From Thalia democratica (Eukaryota), in assembly GCA_965202585.1 (NCBI GenBank), contig OZ241826.1, positions 26,474,001 to 26,538,000 of the forward strand: a stretch of 64,000 nucleotides of DNA. The letters are read 5' to 3'. Under the pieces are notes generated by a model that saw nothing but the letters and a program-made list of their open reading frames with translations, was not told the origin of the DNA and did not search any database. Numbering within the stretch: position 1 is the stretch's first letter; the number at the start of each line of letters is the position of its first letter. The position numbers and the translations under genes were made by a program. Positions 74 through 53,100 of the stretch are shown one piece after another.

Positions 74-173
74 NNNNNNNNNNNNNNNNNNNNNNNNNNN
101 NNNNNNNNNNNNNNNNNNNNNNNNNNNNNNNNNNNNNNNNNNNNNNNNNNNNNNNNNNNNNNNNNNNNNNNNN
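74..173. other. Assembly gap (100 N, placeholder-size scaffold gap)
   Basis: Run of exactly 100 N. Confidence 0.99.
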
Positions 174-19545: not shown

Positions 19546-20402
19546 ACTTTTTACCAACATAATTTCCTTGATTTTAAACTTTTTTAGATTAGTTGTAGTT
19601 CTTATTTTTAATTGATGCACAAATTTCTTTTCAAGTGTGTATTGATTTTAAGAGTAACTCATAAACACTTTAATCTCAGAATTGTTTTAAAATGCCGAAA
19701 AATATTAATTAAATTAAGATATATACTGGCGTATACTTATTTTTGTATACCGTTATCCCTAACCCAGCTCACTTGAACATGGAACAAACAAAACAATTAT
19801 TAAATATTTAAAATTAGAAATAAAATGACAAAGTGTTTGAAAAATTATTTTTGACATAAACAAACTACTAGCAGGTTTGTGAAGCTGACCTTTGATATCT
19901 TTTATCAATAAATGAATACAATTTTGTGGAAAAATAAAATTTTAATTATAAAAGTTTATATTAACCTCTTGTAAGTTTAGTTTATTTTAATACACCAACA
20001 CCAGATTCATTACGGTTAAAGCATAGCATTTACATTAGTTTTCTTTAATTAATATAAAAATTACTTGTAGCAACTCGACAAAGCAAAATTTTTGCAACAA
20101 AATATTAAATATAATAGGAAATATGTAAAACTCAGTTAACGGAAAAGGAGAGCTGGTTGTAAGTTCACACTTTTAAGTTCTTATTTACAAAAGTGTTTGG
20201 AAATAAATTCGGAGTTAAAACAGTATATATTAACACAAAAGGATTCTATAATGAGTTTAAATAAGAATTTGTTTAAACTGGAAAGATTAAAAACGATAAA
20301 TAAACTCTAAAGCAATGGCTTATTCTATTTTGAAAAATTTTCTACTTTTTTTAACGTCCAAGTATTTTAGAGATTAAAAAAATCAAATAAACGTTTTCAA
20401 AG

Positions 20403-20561
20403 GTGTACGACGGACAAACCGAATCTGACGCCCAACTGGCCAACATTTTCGACAACTACAACCAGAGGTACCACATTGAAGCGACCGGTAACTGGATGTA
20501 CATCGTGTTCAGATCTGACAGCGCCAACACCGCCAAGGGATTCTACTTCGATTACCAATAA
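20403..20561 (+). CDS. Terminal coding exon of a CUB-domain protein (upstream exons not located)
   Basis: ttttcaaag| then VYDGQTESDAQLANIFDNYNQRYHIEATGNWMYIVFRSDSANTAKGFYFDYQ*. This matches the C-terminal half of the CUB consensus (VYDG..S.GN.L.V.F.SD....GF...Y). GC-rich codons; AATAAA at 20557 and 20581. Confidence 0.85.
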   Translation: MYDGQTESDAQLANIFDNYNQRYHIEATGNWMYIVFRSDSANTAKGFYFDYQ

Positions 20562-20788
20562 ACATACTTTGATGTTACTGAATAAACTTGTTTGATGTAT
20601 TATTTGTATTTGTATTTATTCTAAGTAAATCTATAATGTTTTTATATGATAAATAAAAATTCCTTCACCATTATTGTTTTTTTTTTGGAGTAGTTTTCGG
20701 GTTTTGATCAAAAATATGCTGTACTATCATGTTTCAGTACTACAATTTTGTACCGTTTCCTAATTAAAAAAGCCAATATTTATTTCGG

Positions 20789-20827
20789 TCATCTGATGAG
20801 TCCTAATAAGGACGAAACTGGTCGTAG
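20789..20827 (+). ncRNA. Minimal type I hammerhead ribozyme motif
   Basis: tcat-CTGATGA-gtcct[aata]aggac-GAAA-ctg-GTC^gtag. Full conserved core, 5-bp helix II with the G10.1-C11.1 pair, GUC triplet (cut after 20823). Helix III is 2 bp and helix I is weak. Confidence 0.72.
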
Positions 20828-23800
20828 GATTGTCTCGGATGCTGTTGTTGTTGATCTTGCGGTAAAGTTCATTGTCTAATTAAAAAAAGAAAACAAGTTA
20901 TATTTTCTGGTGTTTTATACGAATAAGCTGCGTAAACCGTGGTTTAAAATATTGTTAACCTCCTTGCTTCAAATAATTTAAACAAAAAAGTTTTTTATAT
21001 GCTTTAATATCATGTTTAATATTGTTTATGAATAATTTAAAGTTAGTGTGGTACGGAGAAAAACAGATTAGATGCACTTGAAAACTAAAGTTGGATAGTT
21101 TTACGATTCAAAATCAATCTGTAAAAGCTTGAAACTTTAGCACAGCTCTATTTTTAGTTCCAAATTTAAAACTTTACCTTTAATCAACTTTAATTTAAAA
21201 AGATAATTTAAGTTTAAAGTTGAAATTAGAGTATACTTACAGTTATGCTAGTTCAACTTAATGATACTCACTTGAACTTTTTTCAACTTTCCCTTGTGTA
21301 ATTTGTTTAAACTTTTGTTGCATATATAAATTTTTAACTTAAAAGTTTAATGTTCAGTGGTATAAAGTTCAAAAAACTTCAACGTCTACTGTCGATTACT
21401 TTAGAATATAACTTTTAAGTACGATGATAAAATTATACAAACGCAATACAATTTATTTGATTTACTTATAACTACTAAAATTTAGAACAAGATAAAATGA
21501 AATTTGGGAGTTAAAAACACCAAAATTTTGAATAGTATGTATTGAAGTCAAAAGACAAATATGTATATTGAAGTTAAGAAACAACGTGACGCTATAAAAC
21601 ATCCACTCGCTTCTAATGGTATAGTACGAAAAGAAATAACAAACAAAGTTCAAATTGAAAATTAATTTTGAATTTTATATCAATTAGTTTTCTAACTTCT
21701 TTAGCAACAAAAATGTTTTTTTTTTTATTAAAATATGCATCAACTAGGGGTTTTAAAAGTATTTAATAAAGTGTTTATTTTAAGACTTGTGTAATTTAAG
21801 GCAGTTATGTCGTTTAGTTAGTATGATTGGTTTTTGAAGTATAACGTCGCGTTCTACAAAAAAATATTGACTCTTGCTTTTGAGTCATTTTGATCCGGCC
21901 AGAACTTAGTTAGGATACAAATTATATTTTTGAAAACAGAAACATAACAGAAAAGACCGTATTCGGTAATTATCTAAAACAGAAACAATTTAATTTTTCA
22001 AAAAAAAAAGCTTATGCTCTTCGAAACATTTTCTCTTAATATCTTTTTAACACTAACATCAATTAACATAAAGTTATAATAAATAGCTATCTAGAATACA
22101 CGTATGTTTGTTTAAAACTATCCGTGCTAAGTTAATAAACATTCACTCATTTTTTTTTTAAATAAGCTTTAACTTTATTTCTATTCTTGCTAGTGCTCGT
22201 TGTAAAGATCAATGTTTTGTCGTAAAATCAGTGAAAATAACGCAAAAAATTTATAAACCGTAAAAAATAACTAAACATTTTTATCAAAACATCAAGCAGT
22301 GTATTGCAGCTTTCTTTTTATTTTACTATTTCCAAATTGGTTTAATTGAAAAACCGGGTTATCTCAAAACTAGGATTCATTATTTTAATTAAGTTTTATA
22401 TTCCAAGGATTATTTTAAAGTGAAAACACGTAAAAGTATTGTTTCTATTTGTACAAACTTAAAGTAAGAAGCGTTCAAAGGACAAATTATTATATATGGA
22501 AAAATATTTTTTTTGCATAAACAGATTCAAACTTAGCTAATTTTAAAAGTCGAGTGCTTAAAAACAAAAACTTTTAGACCAAAACGAAAGACATTTTTAC
22601 AATTAAGAATGTGCAAAGCTATTCTAAAAATAAAATTGATATTACTTATAATATTTAAACTAATCTTTCATTAATTGTAGTCTAAAATTATTAACTGTAA
22701 AATAATCACCTAATATTTTAGTATTTACAAATCTTTGTCTTTGGATGATTACTAACATTGATGAAAAAACAAACATCTAAATTACTTGATATACTTAACA
22801 CAATAATATTCATTAACATAACTAGTTGACATAATTCATTTATTGAAAGTTATGTTTAATTTTTATAGAATATATGTTAAGTGGACTTGTAATTTTATTA
22901 CTAAATTTATTCAGTCCGACGTCATAAAAATACTATAATGACGTCATACAAATATTATTACCACCATATAATCTGTTAGCAGATTTTCTTAAATAAAATG
23001 TCTTGAAACAGGCTTATAGTATTCTTTTAATTATATCATTTATAATTCGCTTCACCAAAGGCAAGCACACCTTAACAGGTAGCTTTAATTATTGATAACT
23101 TGTATTTAATACTGCCAAAACTTTCTTAAGCAATTTTAAGAGCAAAATTTTTTAAAATATCGTTGATCAAGCTGCTTAAAATCACTTTTTATAGATAAAA
23201 AATTTTGATAAACTTTTTCATTAAACTTATCTATATACCATTGTATAGAGAAGCAAAAAAAACACCATCAACTTAAAACTTTACTTTTTAAATTTCGCGA
23301 TGGGTAATACTGTAACGAATAAAAATAATGTTTGTAGACAATAATATGAAACACAGATTAAAACCTTACCTTGCTAAGTTAACTAAACATTTTGAATCAT
23401 CTAAGTAACAAAATTTATCCTTATGAAATTAAATTACCATAAATTACTTATAACCATTTAATCTATCTTAGCTCAAGAACTTTAAACTGTCTGACAAATA
23501 AATTTTTTAAGGGCATTTGTTGCTCAAATAAATTACTTAGATATACATTTTAGTTAAGTTTTCTTCCTACACTATAAAGTGTAGAAAAAAATTATTCTTG
23601 TAATTCTCTTACCTAGCAAAAAAACTTACAAGTAGATGCATAAACATAAGCATACACATAAAACTGCTTTAAAATAAGTGTGAAAATTTAACATGAAACA
23701 CAATAAAATCTAACTGTTCTTCATAGGTATTATTTTTAAAAAGTGTATAAGTTGATAATATCAAAAACATGTAATTTTGATTTTATCTCTATCTATTACT

Positions 23801-24372: not shown

Positions 24373-27300
24373 TCACTTTCCGAGTTCTCCCACCCTCTTA
24401 TAATGCTTTTGCTTCTTGGTCATGCCAAACTGCAGTTTCTGCTGTTTCCTCCTTCTACTCTGACCAACGTCCACCTTCACTACATCCGGGTGCATTGGAC
24501 TGATGAACTTGCCTGTAAAAAGTTTGTTAATCTAATTTCCTTTGTCAGGGCCGTAGGTTCAGCAAGCCTTCATTTACTTGTTTGTTAATAAACATTAATT
24601 TTTGCTTACATTTTGACAAGATTTTCGTTATCTAAAACCAACTTGAACATGTTTAAATCGTAAACAGAAAAAGAAAATTATGTTTGGAACCGACCGTAAT
24701 CTACTAGACGACACTGGATCGCAACGAATGTGCTCGACACTAGATATTTTTTCAACCTTTTTAGATTATTTACTAAACACAAATACAGCATGCATACCTG
24801 AAACAGTCTCGATCTTGGGCCGGTTGATCTTCTTGAGCGAGAGAGCCGTGTTGTACTGCCTCGCCACGGGGTAGTCCAGTGACCTCTCGAAAGCTGGGAC
24901 GTCTCTGTGGTACTCCCACGGTATCTGCTGCACCTGTTTGCGCGTTGGTTTGTTCACGTTTGTTTGTTATGGTGGCAAAAAAGTTATTAGAACAATGAGT
25001 AGTTTTGATGGGTAGGTTTATGTTGCAACTATTAATAGTTACTTTACTAAATATATAATATTATTTTGAAAAAAAAAGAGCTTAAAACAAAACTAATACA
25101 AAAAAAAAGTTTTGATGCGCACATTGTAGCTATTTCAGCAACTTCTCAATTAGAAACAAATAATTTTTACAGTCATATACATCAAGAACTCAATAAAAAC
25201 CTGCATCTTGGTCAAACCGAGATCTCTATGTTTGGTCGGGATCCACGCGAAACTCTTCCTCTCTTTCTCCACATCCCTCATCTTCCTCTTCTACAATAAG
25301 AAACAACATTTGAAAACTTAATTTCAAACAAAAACTTCAATTGTGTTTCGTTCTGCCATTCATGTAATGCAAACTTTTCTTTTTTACACTTGAATACTTT
25401 ATTTGACAAAAGCTTCGAAAATAATTAAATTTTCTCAAAACAATCGTCGTAATAAAAAAAATTGTACAACATAAAAAGAAAAATATAAATAAATAATTAT
25501 ATTCTAATCAATTTACAACCAAACAACCTTGGCCTTCTTCTTCTTCTGGGTGATTCCTTCCCCCGCCCACCCGGTACCGAACCCCGGCATGTCCAGCTCC
25601 ATCATCTCCTTCTCCCTCTTCCGCTCCTCCTCCTTCTCGTGCTCCCCCCACACGTCGTCCTCCTCGAACGCCTCCTCGATCAACCCAGCGTTCTTGTCTG
25701 TGAAAATTTAATATTTTTTAAGAGCTTTTCTACAAAAAAAAAAACACAGTTAAATGCAATTTAGCGGCACGTCGGAATTCAAGGAAAGATTTCCCGAAAA
25801 ATAAACATTCATTTAATTTACGAAAGTCAACTAACTAAAAAAATTTATTATCAAAACTTTGGTAAACTTAATATAAAAAGCACTCACCCGGAACGAAATC
25901 GTTCATGAGGTCGTCCACGTCTTCCTCAACTTCCTTCCCTCCTCCCACGACGATCAGCTCCTCTTCACCGTCGCGCAACTTCACCGGCTTCAACACTTCC
26001 TCCTGCTGAACCACTTGTTACAAAAACCGACGAGTCGCTGAATTTAAACTATCACGTTTGAGAATTATGAATACGCTTGTTGCTATGTGCTTTGAATTTT
26101 AGAAAATAAACAAAGATGTCTCGACTTTTAGAGGAGAAATTATGTATTTATCAGTTTATAAATTACGTGATATATTTATTAGTTTGCATAATAAAGTCTT
26201 GTAAGAACAAATAAAAAAAAATATTAAGAGACACGTTCAAAATTCCACCCAGTCAAGTTCGAGAACCGTTTACCGACCGAGAGTTAGGGGTAACAGTGAT
26301 AGTGAAAAATAAATAAATGCAAAAATTATATAAAACAAATTAATAAACAAAGAAATCAAAAAAAGATCGGGTGGATTTTGAACGTGAGAGAATTTCGATA
26401 GTACACCGTCATCACAACAAACCTTCCTTTCAACAGCCACCATCTTCGTTTCCCCCTCCCCGTCCAAACCGGCCTCCTCCGTCTCAACTTCCACCATCAC
26501 CGTGTTTTCTTCCTTCTCTTCGGCTTCCTGCTCCTCCCTGGCCGCCTTCACCACCTCCTCTGCTGCTTGCAACGATTTCAGTGATTCCAACGCGCTGGTG
26601 AACTTTTGCTCGTTCCTTAATGCTTCGCTGTCCTGAGCATGATTGTCTGCTTCTTCTTGAATTTTTTGGTTTTAATGAAAGTTTTGAATTTCAATTGAGT
26701 ATTTCATTGTTTACAAATTATAAAAACTTGGACATAGCCTTTAAATTTAACTTTAATCTGTTTAAAATTAGCCGTTTCAGATGTAAAATAACTGATTCTT
26801 AAAAAACTAAAATTAAAAGTGGCTGTAAAGTTTTAGTTTCAAAGTTAAATTGCAAACAATTTTTTAAACTTTCCAATTAATTGTTCTTATTAAACAAACA
26901 AGAACAAATACAAACCTTCAGTCTCTTCACTGTCGTCTTGTTCAGCTGCCAGCCACTTGTTGTCAGACTTCAGCGGTTTCACAACCTCTTGTTGAACATC
27001 GTTACTTTCTCCTTCATCGTCATCATCTTCCTCCGATTCACTGCTGTCACTTTCAACCTGATGATAATTTTCAAGTAAACTTTCTTAGCTCCATTGAATT
27101 AAGAACCTTTACGTTATTTCTGTAACTTCAACAAACACTCCATAAACATTTTGAACGAGCCATCAAATCAATTGATGCGATAAACACCAAACAAATCAAA
27201 CACATTTTATACTTATCATTTTATTAAAGAAATTATAAATACATTTATTATTGTAACACACCTTTCTCTTCTTCATCAGTTCCTTGTGCCTGTCAGCTTC

Positions 27301-30300
27301 GGCGTTCATCTTTTCCCTGACGTCTTCGTTGTATTTGGCTATCTTCGCCTTAAATTTTGAATTTTGTTTAAAAACTTATGCATAAACTATTTTAAATTTT
27401 GAAGTAGTTATTTAGTTTGTTACTTTACTTTTATTTAGAATAAAGTTTCTAACCACTAACATCGTTGTATTTATTTAAAATTAAATTGCAATATTCACCT
27501 TATCCTTATGCCATATTCCCGTCATGATAAAATTGCTAATGACTAACATAAGGTTATGAATAACTTAATTACACCTAAATAAATTACAACCCTAACCTTG
27601 TTCTTGTGCCATTTTCCCTGCCCCCGGTGAGCCAACGTAGCCCTCTCCTTGGCTCTCGCTCTCATGTGTTCCTCTTCCTCGTCTTCCTGATCTTCCTCGT
27701 CGCTCCCTTGCAGCTCCTTCAACTTCTGCTGCTCCTGTTGATTTTTTTTTTAGGTTTGATCTTTATACATTACTATTATTTTTAAAATTAACAAATTTTT
27801 AGTAATTTGTTTAAATAAATGTCTTTTTGAAATTATGGCAGCTAATGTTTTTTTTTCAAGATAACTTTATTAAACAATGGTTTTTTGTTCAAAAAAGTTT
27901 CACTCAGTCATTGTAAAAAGGTAAAACTTAATAATAGAATAAATAATTTTATTTTTCAAAATATCTTTTAAAAAAAAATTTTTGATCGTTAACCAATAAA
28001 ATGACATTTATATTATTCCTATAAATTATAAAAAAAGTGAAACTTATCTATGAAATGGTACATTCGAACCTTCTCTTTTTTCTTTCTCTGCACCCTCCTG
28101 AAGTTCTTGCTCTTGATCTTCTTGGTCCTCTTGTACATCTGCTGCATCCTTCCCATGAAGACCCTGTTCTTCTGCAGCTGCTTCAGCCTCTCCCTCGCTT
28201 CCTGCTCGGACATCCTCTCTAGTGCCTCCTTGTCCCTCAGCGTAAGTCCCCGCCACCTTGTGAAACAATTACTTCAAAGTTGTCCGGTTTAAATATATAA
28301 GAAACATAAGATCGTTAAACATTGTATTACATAAAAAACCACTAAAAAAAGGAACTTAAAATAAATCAAGAATTTGAATAGTCATGAACCCTACTACTCA
28401 TAACACACCTGTGTATTTATTACAAATGCGCTACATATATACATACCTGCCGTGGTCGATTTCCTTATCTTTCGGACCGTACGTTGCCATCAGCTGGGCT
28501 TCCAAATCGCAAACTGGCTTCCTGGCCGTTGTGACTGTGTATTGGAGTAAAAGTTATTAAACAACCGAGAAATACATGCGCACAGGACAAGCTTTTGAGT
28601 AGTTGTAATTATAGTTTTTTTTTTGAAATTCTGACAATTTAAGTTACTTACTAATAATATAGGTTCACATGATAAAGATATACTCAAATTAAAAAGTTTA
28701 AAGTAAAGTGCTATAGTTTATTTTTAAGCATATTGAACGACCAAATCTCAAAAAATCATTAAAAATACCTTACTCTAATGCCTGCAAAGTTATTGGTAGT
28801 AATAAACTGTTTAAATTACAAAAATCAGCATAAACTCTAGTTCCATAAACTTATAATACCTTAAAATGAATATCAAAAATAAAAAAATCCATACAACTTA
28901 AATCGCACCTCTCGAGTTTGCCCCCATCTTGCCCAGGTAGTTGCTCCTCAGCGGCTTCTGTTTTGGCGGGAACATTATGTGGTCTTCCCGCCACATCAGC
29001 TGGGCGTGATCGTCCCACTTGGAAGCCTCCTTGTTGTTTTTGATGGCGAGCGCCCTCATCTGGATGCGCTTCGACTCCGGCTTGCTCGGTTCGGCCTGCA
29101 ACGTTTTCTTGTTCTTTTCAAGCATCTCCATCTTTCTCTTCATTTGGTCGCCTGAAAATAAGAAAGTTAATTCTAAACTCAAGGTTTTTTATTTGTTAAA
29201 GGATGAAAAATTATATTCATCAAATTTTAAAAAGTATATAGTAACTGAATTTCTTTAATATATTCGACTAAAACACTTATCACTGTTTTTATTATTCATA
29301 TAAGAGAATAACTTTTTAACTGAAACTTCTTTAACTTAATTACTTTACAACTTTAAATGATTAAACTTTTGTAATTAATAGTGTTCTTAGATTAGGTTTT
29401 GTGTTTAGTCTAATTTACACTTATTTATCATTTACAGTCAAAAACTTGCTATATAAAATAGCAATAAGAGTAATTCAAACAAACTAATTGAAATCTTTTC
29501 TAAAATAAAAGAAAACATAGCATAGCTAAAGTTTATTTCTGAAAAGTTAGTATCGTTTAACAAACTATAAAATAATATTTGTTTCAATGTTCTTGAACTA
29601 TGATAAATAAGTTTAAGAGCATGGGGGAGTGTCTGATAATTATTTTTACTAAAAATAACATTGGATCTTATATGAAAGCCACATATGAAAGTACGTACTA
29701 CAAGCCAGTTTTTATAGAATTAAAAAATCATATTTAACTTTTGATATATTGTAATCTTTGTATAAAGCTTCTGATAATACGTTTAGACCGCAATTTTTTG
29801 TATTCAATATTCTCAGAAATTTGAAAAACCACTAAAAATCTATCTTCTTCTTTATTTTTTGAGCTAGAGACATCAGACTTTCAGGAAACGATCATTTTAT
29901 AGTTTAAACGGTTTAAAATGTTGCCATTTTCAAATTATTAAAAAATAAAATTTCTAGATAAAAACAAAAATAATAAGAGTTTTTTTTTAATGAAAATTTT
30001 ATTTTTCAAAACGAGGTTTTAGTTTGCTCCTTCTTTTAGAAACCTATTAACATCACCGATTTTGATTACTTTTATGTCAAAAATTACTTTGAGTTTGTTA
30101 AAGGGGTTAAAATTTCTGATAGCTCAGATAAAACTCTATAAAATAAAATCAACTTTAAAAATCAATTTGATCACCCCCTATGCAACTAAATCATAAGCAC
30201 ATAGTTTCAAAGCATTATATTTAAAATGTTTAAATAATTTAAATTTATGAAATAATTTTTTTTTATACATAAAACAAGTCTTTTTCACAACACAAATATA

Positions 30301-32652
30301 TTTCAACAATTTTCTTCAGTGTGATTACAATTATTTTCCTATTTCATAGAGCAAATAAAATATGTTCGCCAGAAGTATTTCAGAATGAACTTAAGGTTAT
30401 AAAAGAATTACTAATAAAGAATGGATACCCTAATCCGTTGATTGATAGGGTATTCAAAACTGAATTGAGAAGACTAAAGTACACAAAACCTTATGGACCA
30501 GAGAAATGTCCTGTTCTATTAATTTTGCCTTATGTGGGTGAAAAATCAAAACAAGTTGAAAGAGATATCAAGAATATGACAGAAAAAGTTTACCATGCTT
30601 CTAAACCAAGAGTAATTTTTACATCTACTGCTATCCTAAATCCTAGAGGTAAAGATCTAATATCCTACAAGCACAAAAGTTGCGTGGTATACACGTATAA
30701 ATGCTGTTGCGCAAACAGCTATATAGGACAAACATCTAGGCATTTAGAAACAAGAATAAAAGAGCACGTACCTAAGTGCGTGAAAGACCATATCAAAAAT
30801 CAACCGAAGAAAATGAGTATTGCAACCTTAAACGCAACAAAAAGATCATCAATTTCAGAGCACTTAGTAAAAAATCCTAAATGTGGTAATAATTACAGTG
30901 AGACAAAGTTCAAAGTTTTAAGAAGTTGCACGAACATTTTTGATTTAATTAAAATAGAAGCTATTTATATTCACTTGGACAAGCCAGAATTATGCAAACA
31001 AAGAGAGTTTGATTACTCTTTATCCTTGTTTAAATTAGACTAATTTTGTTTTGTTTTAAATGTTACAGTTAATTATGTTTTCCTTGTTGTTTTTAAATTT
31101 TTTGTTATAGTTTAGGGTTTTTTTTACTAATTGATTGATAATTTCTCATATAATTAAAAAGGCTATATAAGTTTAAAATTTGTTTTACCTTGTTACAATT
31201 GTAATCACACTGAAGAAAATTGTTGAAATATATTTGTGTTGTGAAAAAGACTTGTTTTATGTATAAAAATTAAAATTAGCAGACATATGTTTAAAATTTT
31301 TTTTTAATAAAGCAAGACTAAATTAAAGGAAATTTGAAAAACTTATTTGAAGATAACATTAATTTATTGATTTAATTGATTTCAATACCAAAATTTGGAA
31401 TGAAGTAATAACCAAATTTCAAAAAAATATACACAAAATTGAATTAAGGGCTTAGGGGAGTTAATCACTATTTTAACATTTTAGTCCTATTTTTAAGACT
31501 TTCAAATAAGCTACAAGATGCTTTTTACAGATTTTATAAGTTCAAAATAATATTTGAGATATAGCAGGTCAAAGTCAGAGGCATTTTCCTTATGGGGGTT
31601 GCAAACTAAAACCGCAAAAACAGTTTTGTTTTTGTTTTTTTTATCATAAAACTTTTATTTTTTAATTTTCTTTTGACAGAATTTTCTAAATATTGCAAGA
31701 ACCATTTCCTGAAAACTTGAGGTAGTTATCTCAAAAAAACGTAGGAGAAGATGGATTATTATAGATTTCTAGTTGATTGTTGTTTTACTTTGGGCCACCC
31801 ATAACGAACCTATTGTTATCTCTGACTTTGACCTGCTATATCTCAGAAAATTTTTTAAGTTTTAAAAATCTATAAAAAGCAACTTGTAGCTTAGTTAAAA
31901 CTCAATAATATACTAAATTGTGAAAAAGTTGATTTATGCCCCTATGCCTTTAAATATGAAAGAATTTTTCTTATTTATGTAAAATAATTAAAACATGATA
32001 AGGATCTAAATATCTTAAAACTGGTGAAAATATAAAAGTTTAATGTTCATCTTAAATGTAATAAATTCTGAAATTTTATAATATTAGTAAAAAAGCTATG
32101 CACACTACTATAACAAAAAAGTAAGCAAAGAAACAAATAAAAGTTAAAGTCAAAAACAATATTTTTTAAAATTATCTGTTTGTATATACTTATGCAATCT
32201 ATAATAACAAAAACTATTGATATATAAACAATAAAATTGCCAACCTTTAACATTTCCCTCTTCAAATATGTCACCAAAAGCCGTGTCTTTATCATCTAAT
32301 ACCGGACCGTCAACCAAAGTCCTGCGTCTTTTGTTGGTGGCTTGTTTCTCTTCCTCCTCCTTTACAATTTGAAGAGTTTAAATTTTTTTCTATTAACCTT
32401 AGGGGCAAAGAATTATAAACTGTTAATTTGGTCAAAAACAACATATTTACTTTTTTCTAGCAATTTTTTTTAACCTATCAGATGCTTTTTAGAGTTAAAA
32501 AATATTATTCAGTACTTTTTTTTGTGAGATTTTATAAGTATAATAGCTGTTTAAACCTTGACATTGAGAGCATCAAGCACTTTGTCCATCTTCTGGTTCT
32601 CATCTTCCGATGAGTAGCAATCACTGCTGTAATCTTCTGAATCTGAACTCAT
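24373..32652 (-). CDS. UTP14: U3 snoRNA-associated protein 14 (UTP14), complete 14-exon copy, ~660 aa
   Basis: Hand-spliced exons 32652-32557, 32359-32245, 29151-28909, 28534-28447, 28256-28070, 27734-27597, 27348-27262, 27057-26916, 26655-26423, 26005-25888, 25697-25528, 25290-25201, 24933-24798, 24512-24373. All are GT-AG with compatible phases, total 1983 nt (MSSDSEDYSS...GELGK*). Recognised motifs: ASKWD..FPP, MSEQEARERL..KKIKSKNFRRV, ERATLAHRGQGKW, IEEAFEEDDV..LDMPGFGTGWAGEG, QVQQIPW..FERSLDYPVARQYNT..RPKIETVSGKFISP. The acceptors of exons 2, 10 and 13 are the least certain. Confidence 0.92.
26232..26386. mobile_element. 155-bp MITE with CAC..GTG termini and 5-bp TSD (Transib-like) in UTP14 intron 9
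   Basis: AGAGA|CACGTTCAAAATTCCACCC ... GGGTGGATTTTGAACGTG|AGAGA. Confidence 0.75.
29617..30185. mobile_element. Copy-B paralog of the first Kolobok-like MITE, with degenerate termini
   Basis: TTAA|gagcatgggg ... cccctatgcaa; collinear with 1385-1955. Confidence 0.65.
30291..30323 (-). ncRNA. Inverted copy of the Penelope hammerhead (UTP14 sense strand)
   Basis: Exact reverse complement of 31206-31238 within the inverted pLTR. Confidence 0.7.
30321..31043 (+). CDS. Penelope ORF fragment: RT C-terminal helical region plus GIY-YIG endonuclease (240 aa)
   Basis: HRANKICS..NGYP..LPYVG..VVYTYKCCCANSYIGQTSRHLETRIKEH..ISEHL..IEAIYI..PELC. The first residues derive from the inverted pLTR, so there is no native start. 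Confidence 0.88.
   Translation: MITIIFLFHRANKICSPEVFQNELKVIKELLIKNGYPNPLIDRVFKTELRRLKYTKPYGPEKCPVLLILPYVGEKSKQVERDIKNMTEKVYHASKPRVIFTSTAILNPRGKDLISYKHKSCVVYTYKCCCANSYIGQTSRHLETRIKEHVPKCVKDHIKNQPKKMSIATLNATKRSSISEHLVKNPKCGNNYSETKFKVLRSCTNIFDLIKIEAIYIHLDKPELCKQREFDYSLSLFKLD
31206..31238 (+). ncRNA. Minimal type I hammerhead ribozyme in the Penelope 3' pLTR
   Basis: CACA-CTGAAGA-aa[attg]tt-GAAA-tata-TT^TGTG. 4-bp helix I, minimal helix II, self-complementary ATATAT helix III, AUU triplet. Confidence 0.7.
31448..31949. mobile_element. Copy-B paralog of the second Kolobok-like MITE
   Basis: TTAA|gggcttagggg ... cccctatgcct|TTAA; collinear with 2174-2681. Confidence 0.7.
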
Positions 32653-49844: not shown

Positions 49845-50071
49845 ACATACTTTGATGTTACTGAATAAACTTGTTTGATGTATTATTTGTATTTGTATTT
49901 ATTCTAAGTAAATCTATAATGTTTTTATATGATAAATAAAAATTCCTTCACCATTATTGTTTTTTTTTTGGAGTAGTTTTCGGGTTTTGATCAAAAATAT
50001 GCTGTACTATCATGTTTCAGTACTACAATTTTGTACCGTTTCCTAATTAAAAAAGCCAATATTTATTTCGG

Positions 50072-50110
50072 TCATCTGATGAGTCCTAATAAGGACGAAA
50101 CTGGTCGTAG
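50072..50110 (+). ncRNA. Minimal type I hammerhead ribozyme motif (unit B)
   Basis: Identical to 20789-20827. Confidence 0.72.
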
Positions 50111-53100
50111 GATTGTCTCGGATGCTGTTGTTGTTGATCTTGCGGTAAAGTTCATTGTCTAATTAAAAAAAGAAAACAAGTTATATTTTCTGGTGTTTTA
50201 TACGAATAAGCTGCGTAAACCGTGGTTTAAAATATTGTTAACCTCCTTGCTTCAAATAATTTAAACAAAAAAGTTTTTTATATGCTTTAATATCATGTTT
50301 AATATTGTTTATGAATAATTTAAAGTTAGTGTGGTACGGAGAAAAACAGATTAGATGCACTTGAAAACTAAAGTTGGATAGTTTTACGATTCAAAATCAA
50401 TCTGTAAAAGCTTGAAACTTTAGCACAGCTCTATTTTTAGTTCCAAATTTAAAACTTTACCTTTAATCAACTTTAATTTAAAAAGATAATTTAAGTTTAA
50501 AGTTGAAATTAGAGTATACTTACAGTTATGCTAGTTCAACTTAATGATACTCACTTGAACTTTTTTCAACTTTCCCTTGTGTAATTTGTTTAAACTTTTG
50601 TTGCATATATAAATTTTTAACTTAAAAGTTTAATGTTCAGTGGTATAAAGTTCAAAAAACTTCAACGTCTACTGTCGATTACTTTAGAATATAACTTTTA
50701 AGTACGATGATAAAATTATACAAACGCAATACAATTTATTTGATTTACTTATAACTACTAAAATTTAGAACAAGATAAAATGAAATTTGGGAGTTAAAAA
50801 CACCAAAATTTTGAATAGTATGTATTGAAGTCAAAAGACAAATATGTATATTGAAGTTAAGAAACAACGTGACGCTATAAAACATCCACTCGCTTCTAAT
50901 GGTATAGTACGAAAAGAAATAACAAACAAAGTTCAAATTGAAAATTAATTTTGAATTTTATATCAATTAGTTTTCTAACTTCTTTAGCAACAAAAATGTT
51001 TTTTTTTTTATTAAAATATGCATCAACTAGGGGTTTTAAAAGTATTTAATAAAGTGTTTATTTTAAGACTTGTGTAATTTAAGGCAGTTATGTCGTTTAG
51101 TTAGTATGATTGGTTTTTGAAGTATAACGTCGCGTTCTACAAAAAAATATTGACTCTTGCTTTTGAGTCATTTTGATCCGGCCAGAACTTAGTTAGGATA
51201 CAAATTATATTTTTGAAAACAGAAACATAACAGAAAAGACCGTATTCGGTAATTATCTAAAACAGAAACAATTTAATTTTTCAAAAAAAAAAGCTTATGC
51301 TCTTCGAAACATTTTCTCTTAATATCTTTTTAACACTAACATCAATTAACATAAAGTTATAATAAATAGCTATCTAGAATACACGTATGTTTGTTTAAAA
51401 CTATCCGTGCTAAGTTAATAAACATTCACTCATTTTTTTTTTAAATAAGCTTTAACTTTATTTCTATTCTTGCTAGTGCTCGTTGTAAAGATCAATGTTT
51501 TGTCGTAAAATCAGTGAAAATAACGCAAAAAATTTATAAACCGTAAAAAATAACTAAACATTTTTATCAAAACATCAAGCAGTGTATTGCAGCTTTCTTT
51601 TTATTTTACTATTTCCAAATTGGTTTAATTGAAAAACCGGGTTATCTCAAAACTAGGATTCATTATTTTAATTAAGTTTTATATTCCAAGGATTATTTTA
51701 AAGTGAAAACACGTAAAAGTATTGTTTCTATTTGTACAAACTTAAAGTAAGAAGCGTTCAAAGGACAAATTATTATATATGGAAAAATATTTTTTTTGCA
51801 TAAACAGATTCAAACTTAGCTAATTTTAAAAGTCGAGTGCTTAAAAACAAAAACTTTTAGACCAAAACGAAAGACATTTTTACAATTAAGAATGTGCAAA
51901 GCTATTCTAAAAATAAAATTGATATTACTTATAATATTTAAACTAATCTTTCATTAATTGTAGTCTAAAATTATTAACTGTAAAATAATCACCTAATATT
52001 TTAGTATTTACAAATCTTTGTCTTTGGATGATTACTAACATTGATGAAAAAACAAACATCTAAATTACTTGATATACTTAACACAATAATATTCATTAAC
52101 ATAACTAGTTGACATAATTCATTTATTGAAAGTTATGTTTAATTTTTATAGAATATATGTTAAGTGGACTTGTAATTTTATTACTAAATTTATTCAGTCC
52201 GACGTCATAAAAATACTATAATGACGTCATACAAATATTATTACCACCATATAATCTGTTAGCAGATTTTCTTAAATAAAATGTCTTGAAACAGGCTTAT
52301 AGTATTCTTTTAATTATATCATTTATAATTCGCTTCACCAAAGGCAAGCACACCTTAACAGGTAGCTTTAATTATTGATAACTTGTATTTAATACTGCCA
52401 AAACTTTCTTAAGCAATTTTAAGAGCAAAATTTTTTAAAATATCGTTGATCAAGCTGCTTAAAATCACTTTTTATAGATAAAAAATTTTGATAAACTTTT
52501 TCATTAAACTTATCTATATACCATTGTATAGAGAAGCAAAAAAAACACCATCAACTTAAAACTTTACTTTTTAAATTTCGCGATGGGTAATACTGTAACG
52601 AATAAAAATAATGTTTGTAGACAATAATATGAAACACAGATTAAAACCTTACCTTGCTAAGTTAACTAAACATTTTGAATCATCTAAGTAACAAAATTTA
52701 TCCTTATGAAATTAAATTACCATAAATTACTTATAACCATTTAATCTATCTTAGCTCAAGAACTTTAAACTGTCTGACAAATAAATTTTTTAAGGGCATT
52801 TGTTGCTCAAATAAATTACTTAGATATACATTTTAGTTAAGTTTTCTTCCTACACTATAAAGTGTAGAAAAAAATTATTCTTGTAATTCTCTTACCTAGC
52901 AAAAAAACTTACAAGTAGATGCATAAACATAAGCATACACATAAAACTGCTTTAAAATAAGTGTGAAAATTTAACATGAAACACAATAAAATCTAACTGT
53001 TCTTCATAGGTATTATTTTTAAAAAGTGTATAAGTTGATAATATCAAAAACATGTAATTTTGATTTTATCTCTATCTATTACTATTCATTTTTAATTTTT

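Follow-up and report, generated by a model that had tools for sequence, protein, structure and literature searches.

Discontinuous hammerhead ribozymes have reportedly been found in the 3′UTRs of rodent Clec2 genes. The Clec2 ribozymes build their three helices from two distant segments, are conserved between species and cleave in vivo. Minimal hammerheads that dimerise are also said to reside in the pseudo-LTRs of Penelope-like elements. In animals, retrozymes consist of tandem repeats of 150–450 bp with type I hammerheads (Cervera and de la Pena 2020, PMC7229834). The insertions of Penelope-like elements show 5′ truncation and partial tandems forming the pseudo-LTRs; an inverted, 5′-truncated copy lies next to them, and their target-site duplications vary in length (PMC8557442). 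One study describes retrozymes as non-autonomous forms that derive from Penelope-like elements (bioRxiv 10.64898/2026.07.22.740005).

Here we have analysed a perfect hammerhead core that lies downstream of a CUB-domain gene in a window of 64 kb, by which we mean the whole stretch of DNA under analysis. Our results make it very probable that the sequence around this core, at 20771–20882, is a dead insertion of ~105 bp which derives from a very abundant family of non-coding, hammerhead-bearing retroelements.

The hammerhead core and its neighbourhood

The initial annotation described a perfect core with a 5-bp helix II, situated past the stop codon and the poly(A) signals of the CUB gene and identical in the two units of the window, and all of this is borne out by the sequence (Table 1). 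The core, of 31 nt, starts 232 nt 3′ of the stop of the upstream CUB-domain exon, on the sense strand, and its conserved nucleotides are complete: C3–A9, G12–A14, the A15.1–U16.1 pair (A20817/U20822) and C17 (C20823). CUGAUGA occupies 20793–20799, GUCCU (20800–04) pairs with AGGAC (20809–13) over a loop of 4 nt to form helix II, GAAA lies at 20814–17, and the helix III element ACUGGU lies at 20817–22, so the nominal cleavage site falls after C20823. The 31-mer occurs exactly once more, in the second unit, and besides these two copies no further hammerhead core or piece of the repeat unit described below was found in the 64-kb window.

The upstream frame (20391–20558) matches the CUB profile of Pfam at 21.5 bits, just over the cut-off of 21.4, and corresponds to a C-terminal half-domain (profile positions 60–110 of 110). 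The first of the three AATAAA signals, at 20557–62, overlaps the stop codon, and the other two are found at 20581–86 and 20652–57; the CUB mRNA most likely ends by means of these signals, which precede the motif by 140–235 nt. On the opposite side, the convergent UTP14 gene is recognised by two minus-strand matches to Pfam Utp14, with 40.4 bits at 28022–28273 and 30.4 bits at 25516–25707.

Table 1. Features of the insertion, its copy in the second unit and the neighbouring genes (positions in the window)
Feature	Positions	Strand	Basis
Last coding exon of CUB-domain gene, stop TAA 20559–61	20391..20561	+	open frame 20391–20558; Pfam CUB PF00431
Three AATAAA poly(A) signals	20557..20657	+	pattern match; all upstream of the hammerhead motif
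Putative target-site duplication, left copy CTAATTAAAAAAG	20760..20772	.	12-nt exact direct repeat with 20876–20887
Inverted arm	20771..20793	-	reverse complement of unit 122–144, 21/23 identical, blastn-short against the L010 unit
Hammerhead core C3–C17	20793..20823	+	sequence; family model R1 58.5 bits; Rfam Hammerhead_3 24.2 bits
Remaining forward arm, unit positions 32–83	20824..20875	+	96.5% identity to unit 1–86
Putative target-site duplication, right copy CTAATTAAAAAAAG, one extra A	20876..20889	.	direct repeat; sequence
Convergent UTP14 exons (context, outside the element)	25516..28273	-	Pfam Utp14 PF04615
Same insertion and duplications in the second 29.3-kb unit	50043..50172	+	core 50076–50106; outer limits are 20760–20889 plus the 29,283-nt offset

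Could the core have arisen by chance, as a sequence in AT-rich intergenic DNA that happens to fit the hammerhead consensus? A search of the whole window with Rfam gave no match at gathering score, a result that would fit a chance match. In the E-value mode Hammerhead_3 was the sole match, at 24.2 bits (gathering score 48.5), and its alignment relies on a fortuitous upstream GGUC which is supplied by the inverted arm of the insertion. The type III hammerhead reading that this alignment implies was rejected, as the upstream GUC is 2 nt from C3 and helix I cannot form. However, the 31-mer was absent from every one of 100 shuffles of the window, in the genome dozens of loci carry it exactly and 1,516 others carry it with a single base changed, and the homology extends 55 nt past the core. 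A chance match is thus refuted by the shuffles, by the genomic copy number and by the homology beyond the core.

The parent repeat family and the anatomy of the insertion

The motif is one of very many decayed copies, an outcome that the initial annotation had itself named as one that would speak against its reading. With at most 3 mismatches the 31-mer has 3,876 matches in the 802-Mb genome, while the reversed-pattern control gave 0. The form with the palindromic helix III, ACCGGTC, which we call the master, accounts for 1,516 exact copies; the window form, ACTGGTC, has 45, including the 7 that represent the window locus and its duplicates, and ACCAGTC has 23. The helix III element of the window is one change from the palindrome (ACUGGU against ACCGGU in the family), as had been annotated. 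Since ACTGGTC and ACCAGTC are the two CpG-transition products of CCGG, this change looks like ordinary decay.

Many copies of the family are spaced by 327–328 bp on the same strand, or are placed head-to-head. The locus L010 represents a full insertion, with an ORF-less unit of 327 bp, a partial tandem, an inverted arm and a flanking direct repeat of its own, and a second locus (L006) is another mini head-to-head insertion. Independent copies all share the ending ...CATTGTTTAT(TA), which lies ~58 nt 3′ of the cleavage site, and lose their similarity beyond it. Over 35 copies from the sampled loci, 93% of the helix I cells are paired, and across the family helix II is paired in 98.9%. In full copies the 5′ strand of helix I is contained in the 22 nt that precede C3, and the helix comprises 6 bp plus an outer helix. 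There are two sub-families which share an identical 31-nt core and differ in helix I, CCUGC/GUAGG in one and ACUGA/UCAGU in the other, with both-sided changes in 4 of the 6 helix I pairs. This covariation, which represents one or a few compensated events, nevertheless shows on comparative grounds that the helix matters. Full copies align with the whole Rfam model Hammerhead_HH9 (RF02275), including its two-part helix I, at 31–35 bits (E ~1e-6), and they fall under its gathering score of 52 because their helix III is minimal.

No adjacent Penelope ORF had been noticed in the initial annotation, and our results agree with this: in the 14–30 kb part of the window no stop-free frame exceeds 133 aa, and none of 30 related loci of 3 kb contains a Penelope RT/GIY-YIG ORF (RT-like frame of at least 150 aa). 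As neither this part of the window nor these loci contain an ORF for reverse transcriptase and GIY-YIG, the family looks non-autonomous, and for the same reason its tie to Penelope-like machinery is one of architecture and literature. The family is, in our view, one of non-coding, hammerhead-bearing repeats in tandem units of ~327 bp, of the animal non-LTR retrozyme or Penelope pseudo-LTR kind.

The insertion in the window consists of a 23-nt inverted piece followed by unit positions 1–86, and lies between the two copies of a putative target-site duplication of 12–13 bp, so that the whole spans ~130 nt. The stretch 20793–20878 is 96.5% identical to positions 1–86 of the L010 unit, and in BLAST comparisons with 27 independent loci the homology starts exactly at 20793, that is at C3, and stops at 20875–20878. 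The inverted arm shares its outer terminus with the inverted arm of L010, and the forward arm, in which the 3′ strand of helix I is left as an orphan (GUAGGA, 20824–29), terminates at the usual 3′ terminus of the family, ...CATTGT. CTAATTAAAAAA, present at 20760 and 20876, is the only direct repeat of at least 10 nt in 20650–21000, and both copies abut the boundaries of the family homology, immediately outside them. From its position, we take this direct repeat for a target-site duplication, which would enclose a mini-insertion composed of one short inverted arm and one 5′-truncated forward arm. An empty site was sought in the paralogous CUB exon of the window, where homology is lost at 20611, and genome-wide with the left flank as a 208-nt query, and neither search yielded one: 7 of the 7 full matches carry the insertion, and three further matches span only the first 30–66 nt of the flank. 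As neither paralogues nor another species offer an empty site, the putative target-site duplication is defined by the A-rich direct repeat itself.

This anatomy also bears on the initial annotation of the motif as a relic of a solo pseudo-LTR, that is, a once-working terminal repeat that decayed after the autonomous Penelope-like body was lost by recombination. That the motif is a relic of a Penelope-type or retrozyme repeat holds, as it is one of ~3,900 cores, and minimal hammerheads with a palindromic helix III are indeed typical of Penelope pseudo-LTRs (PMC7229834, PMC8557442). A solo pseudo-LTR should, however, retain sequence upstream of CUGAUGA, and here the homology stops sharply at C3, where an inverted piece of the 327-bp unit takes over. 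What is present is a fragment of 83–86 nt which begins at C3 and is fused to this 23-nt piece, and fragment and target-site duplication together amount to only ~130 nt. The matching relatives are ORF-less tandem units of 327 bp, and a Penelope-like ORF of at least 150 aa was found in 0 of the 30 sampled loci. We regard the loss of a larger element by recombination as very doubtful, and favour a short insertion of the non-coding family.

We propose that this insertion arose when a GIY-YIG endonuclease of the Penelope type nicked the DNA at the A-rich sequence CTAATTAAAAAAG, which lies in the 3′ flank of the CUB gene. Target-primed reverse transcription would have begun at the usual 3′ end of the family, ~58 nt past the cleavage site, and would have covered only ~83–89 nt before stopping at C3 of the core. 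The product may then have been joined to the 23-nt inverted piece, coming from elsewhere in the unit and equivalent to the inverted 5′-truncated copy of Penelope-like insertions. Another possibility is that a larger insertion, head-to-head like L010, lost its centre later. The insertion would have given rise to the target-site duplication of 12–13 bp. Later, the CpG in the palindrome of helix III would have undergone a C-to-T change, converting ACCGGU into ACUGGU, and the duplication of the ~29-kb CUB/UTP14 segment would have carried the relic into every unit.

Ribozyme competence and the question of co-option

The initial annotation suggested that the motif could have been co-opted for processing the 3′ end of CUB transcripts or for insulating the convergent CUB and UTP14 genes. 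Such a ribozyme would cut read-through CUB transcripts at 20823, perhaps acting as a dimer. In its favour are the intact catalytic core and helix II, the placement of the motif in sense orientation, 232 nt after the stop, and its presence in every unit of the duplicated array. In addition, the helix III element still forms a duplex of 6 bp, with two G-U pairs when it pairs with itself and one when it pairs with RNAs of the master type.

Against this proposal, the 5′ strand of helix I, which is conserved and compensated in full copies, is absent from the window copy, because the homology to the family starts at C3. Only U20792–G20824 and A20791–U20825 can pair, in agreement with the weak helix I noted in the initial annotation; from the sequence, the window copy appears either never to have had the 5′ strand of helix I or to have lost it. 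The covariance model of the family (R1) gives the window copy 58.5 bits, compared with 79–96 bits for full copies. To adopt the catalytic fold rather than the one of minimum energy costs the window copy 12.8 kcal/mol, and a full copy 2.6 kcal/mol. The masking of the core by a downstream segment, which had also been suggested, is present in the predicted minimum-energy fold of the window copy: CAUCUGA (20790–96) pairs with UCGGAUG (20835–41), and UCCUA with UAGGA, so that in this fold both the core and helix II are destroyed. With helix I lacking its 5′ strand, formation of the three-way junction is precluded and a competing hairpin is predicted, so no self-cleavage is expected. On this modelling, cleavage in cis by the window copy is very unlikely. 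Having neither a second ribozyme nor helix I, the window copy, as read from its sequence, could not release or circularise an RNA.

The change in helix III, an ordinary CpG transition, weakens the dimer. The trans duplex of helix III calculated with duplexfold has -3.2 kcal/mol for ACUGGU, which pairs with itself over 6 bp with two G-U pairs, against -8.3 for the master ACCGGU. A heteroduplex between ACUGGU and ACCGGU, which is possible with the abundant RNAs of the family, has -6.1 kcal/mol and one G-U pair. If such a heterodimeric helix III were combined with a surrogate helix I, retrozyme RNAs could cut read-through CUB transcripts at 20823, and the 3′ flank of a host gene would then be processed in trans. 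That the fragment is cleaved in vivo in this way seems to us to have next to no chance of being true.

Nor does the identity of the units argue for a function. The two units of the window show 4 differences in 1,301 positions (99.7% identity over 1.3 kb), none of them within the insertion, and no difference from 20427 to 21600 around the motif. The identity between units is accounted for by this duplication, which is very young, and is therefore uninformative on selection. The 3′ flank of the CUB gene is present in 7 genomic copies, 3 chromosomal and 4 on unplaced contigs, all with the identical insertion, and the flanks of the third unit and of the unplaced copies are 96–98.6% identical. No conservation of the motif was detected beyond this recent duplication.

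The RNA data are assembled contigs from two marine metatranscriptome runs, one of them primed with oligo-dT, and such contigs cannot show transcript ends. They lie on 20401–20576 and on 20793–20875, and 20598–20783 has none, although gaps between assembled contigs prove nothing. The contigs over the motif run upstream into the helix I strand of the family, and hence derive from other family copies. A run from a second organism contained the CUB exon, together with a repeat family of equal abundance, and no unique flanks at a likeness of at least 90%. The expectation that, if the motif has no role, CUB transcripts end before 20789 finds weak support at the level of contigs, since those of the CUB exon stop at ~20576. 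Together with the three AATAAA signals upstream of the motif, the contigs fit a termination of the CUB transcript before the motif is reached. With the catalytic fold so strongly disfavoured, and the motif being one among ~3,900 copies, we consider its co-option for 3′-end processing or insulation extremely unlikely, and return to the reading of a dead insertion.

Significance and comparison with known systems

The evidence suggests that the motif of the window belongs to an ordinary fragment of a transposon, an inactive retroelement relic of a kind already known. Its biological weight is small, and we see its value rather as a calibration case for hammerhead cores that lie next to genes. In a genome with thousands of retrozyme or Penelope-type copies, a perfect core beside a gene is no evidence of a gene-linked ribozyme, and the deciding checks are the point at which the repeat homology starts and the presence of helix I. 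The locus is also a clean record of a very short insertion product in the Penelope style, with an inverted arm, a forward arm and a putative target-site duplication. Finally, the identical 31-nt core and the fully compensated helix I of the two sub-families give good comparative support to the view that the ribozyme of the family needs helix I.

How does this locus compare with the described systems? The window copy and the rodent Clec2 ribozymes have in common that a hammerhead core follows a stop codon on the sense strand. In the window copy, however, helix I is left without a partner, and the RNA contigs of the CUB exon stop short of the motif. Among the models of Rfam, the type I model Hammerhead_HH9 aligns with the full copies of the family, and the window copy was reported only under Hammerhead_3.

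The parent family shares most with the non-LTR retrozymes of animals. In both, AT-rich tandem units without ORFs (~327 bp in the family) carry a type I hammerhead each, the copies number thousands, target-site duplications exceed 4 bp and RNA is found in transcriptomes. Tandem units of 150–450 bp bounded by type I hammerheads are thus present in the relatives of the window copy, which is itself one partial unit and differs from the retrozymes in being a single fragment of 83–86 nt out of 327, with a 23-nt inverted piece.

The master copies resemble the hammerheads of Penelope pseudo-LTRs, as their helix III is one A-U pair capped by the palindromic CCGG, and such a minimal palindromic helix implies that they act as dimers; the window copy, by contrast, has ACUGGU in place of the palindrome and lacks helix I. 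Penelope-like elements also differ from it in that no ORF for RT/GIY-YIG is present nearby or in the 30 sampled loci. In the form of the insertion itself, however, the window copy is close to them: the 5′ truncation, the adjacent inverted and truncated copy, and the target-site duplication of variable length that characterise Penelope-like insertions all have their counterpart in the window.

Hammerhead core and helix I in two sub-families

In alignment A3 of 30 sampled loci with related hammerhead-bearing repeats (L001-L030), two repeat sub-families have in common an identical 31-nt hammerhead core, and differ in the sequence of helix I, the changes being fully compensated. Outside the shared core and the compensated helix I, the unit sequences of the two sub-families are unrelated.

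Sub-family helices (alignment A3) and locations of features
Feature	Location	Sequence or remark
One sub-family	alignment A3	helix I CCUGC/GUAGG; outer helix CGCGA/UCUCG
Other sub-family	alignment A3	helix I ACUGA/UCAGU; outer helix UUUCGG/CCGAAA
Example copies for sub-family comparison	L010:1479-1553; L021:1479-1553	
Direct repeat copies in L010	L010:1431-1443; 2403-2415	CATGTAGAATAAT
Run of 100 N	window 74-173	assembly gap or masked
Third CUB/UTP14 unit	G000:C1:26456549 upstream	window's own genome, upstream of the window

The CUB/UTP14 array

Over window 1-64000, the segment with the CUB-domain gene and the convergent UTP14 gene recurs in tandem every ~28.2-30.2 kb. Each of these units in turn contains duplicated CUB exons, ~3.65 kb apart and with 67-83% identity. 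Four more near-identical copies are found in the unplaced contigs C227, C536 and C559; these may be haplotigs or collapsed units of the array. In window 30260-31290, neither an Rfam hammerhead at E<=1, nor a CUGAUGA...CGAAAC core, nor similarity to the 327-bp unit of the repeat family was found; all that is present is an inverted pair of sequences that include CTGAAGA, located at 30313 and 31210.

Insertion and distribution of the repeat family

Locus L010 carries a full head-to-head insertion with a 13-nt direct repeat on both sides, which supports target-site duplications of ~12-13 bp for the 327-bp-unit family. With window 20793-20876 compared with runs X2, X8 and X10, the summed contig depth of the family reached about a million in DNA-like runs from two different organisms, and the family was also present in marine metatranscriptome contigs. 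From these sequence matches, the family is common to at least two related species, since it is deep in the runs of both organisms, and is transcribed, since it occurs in the metatranscriptome contigs.
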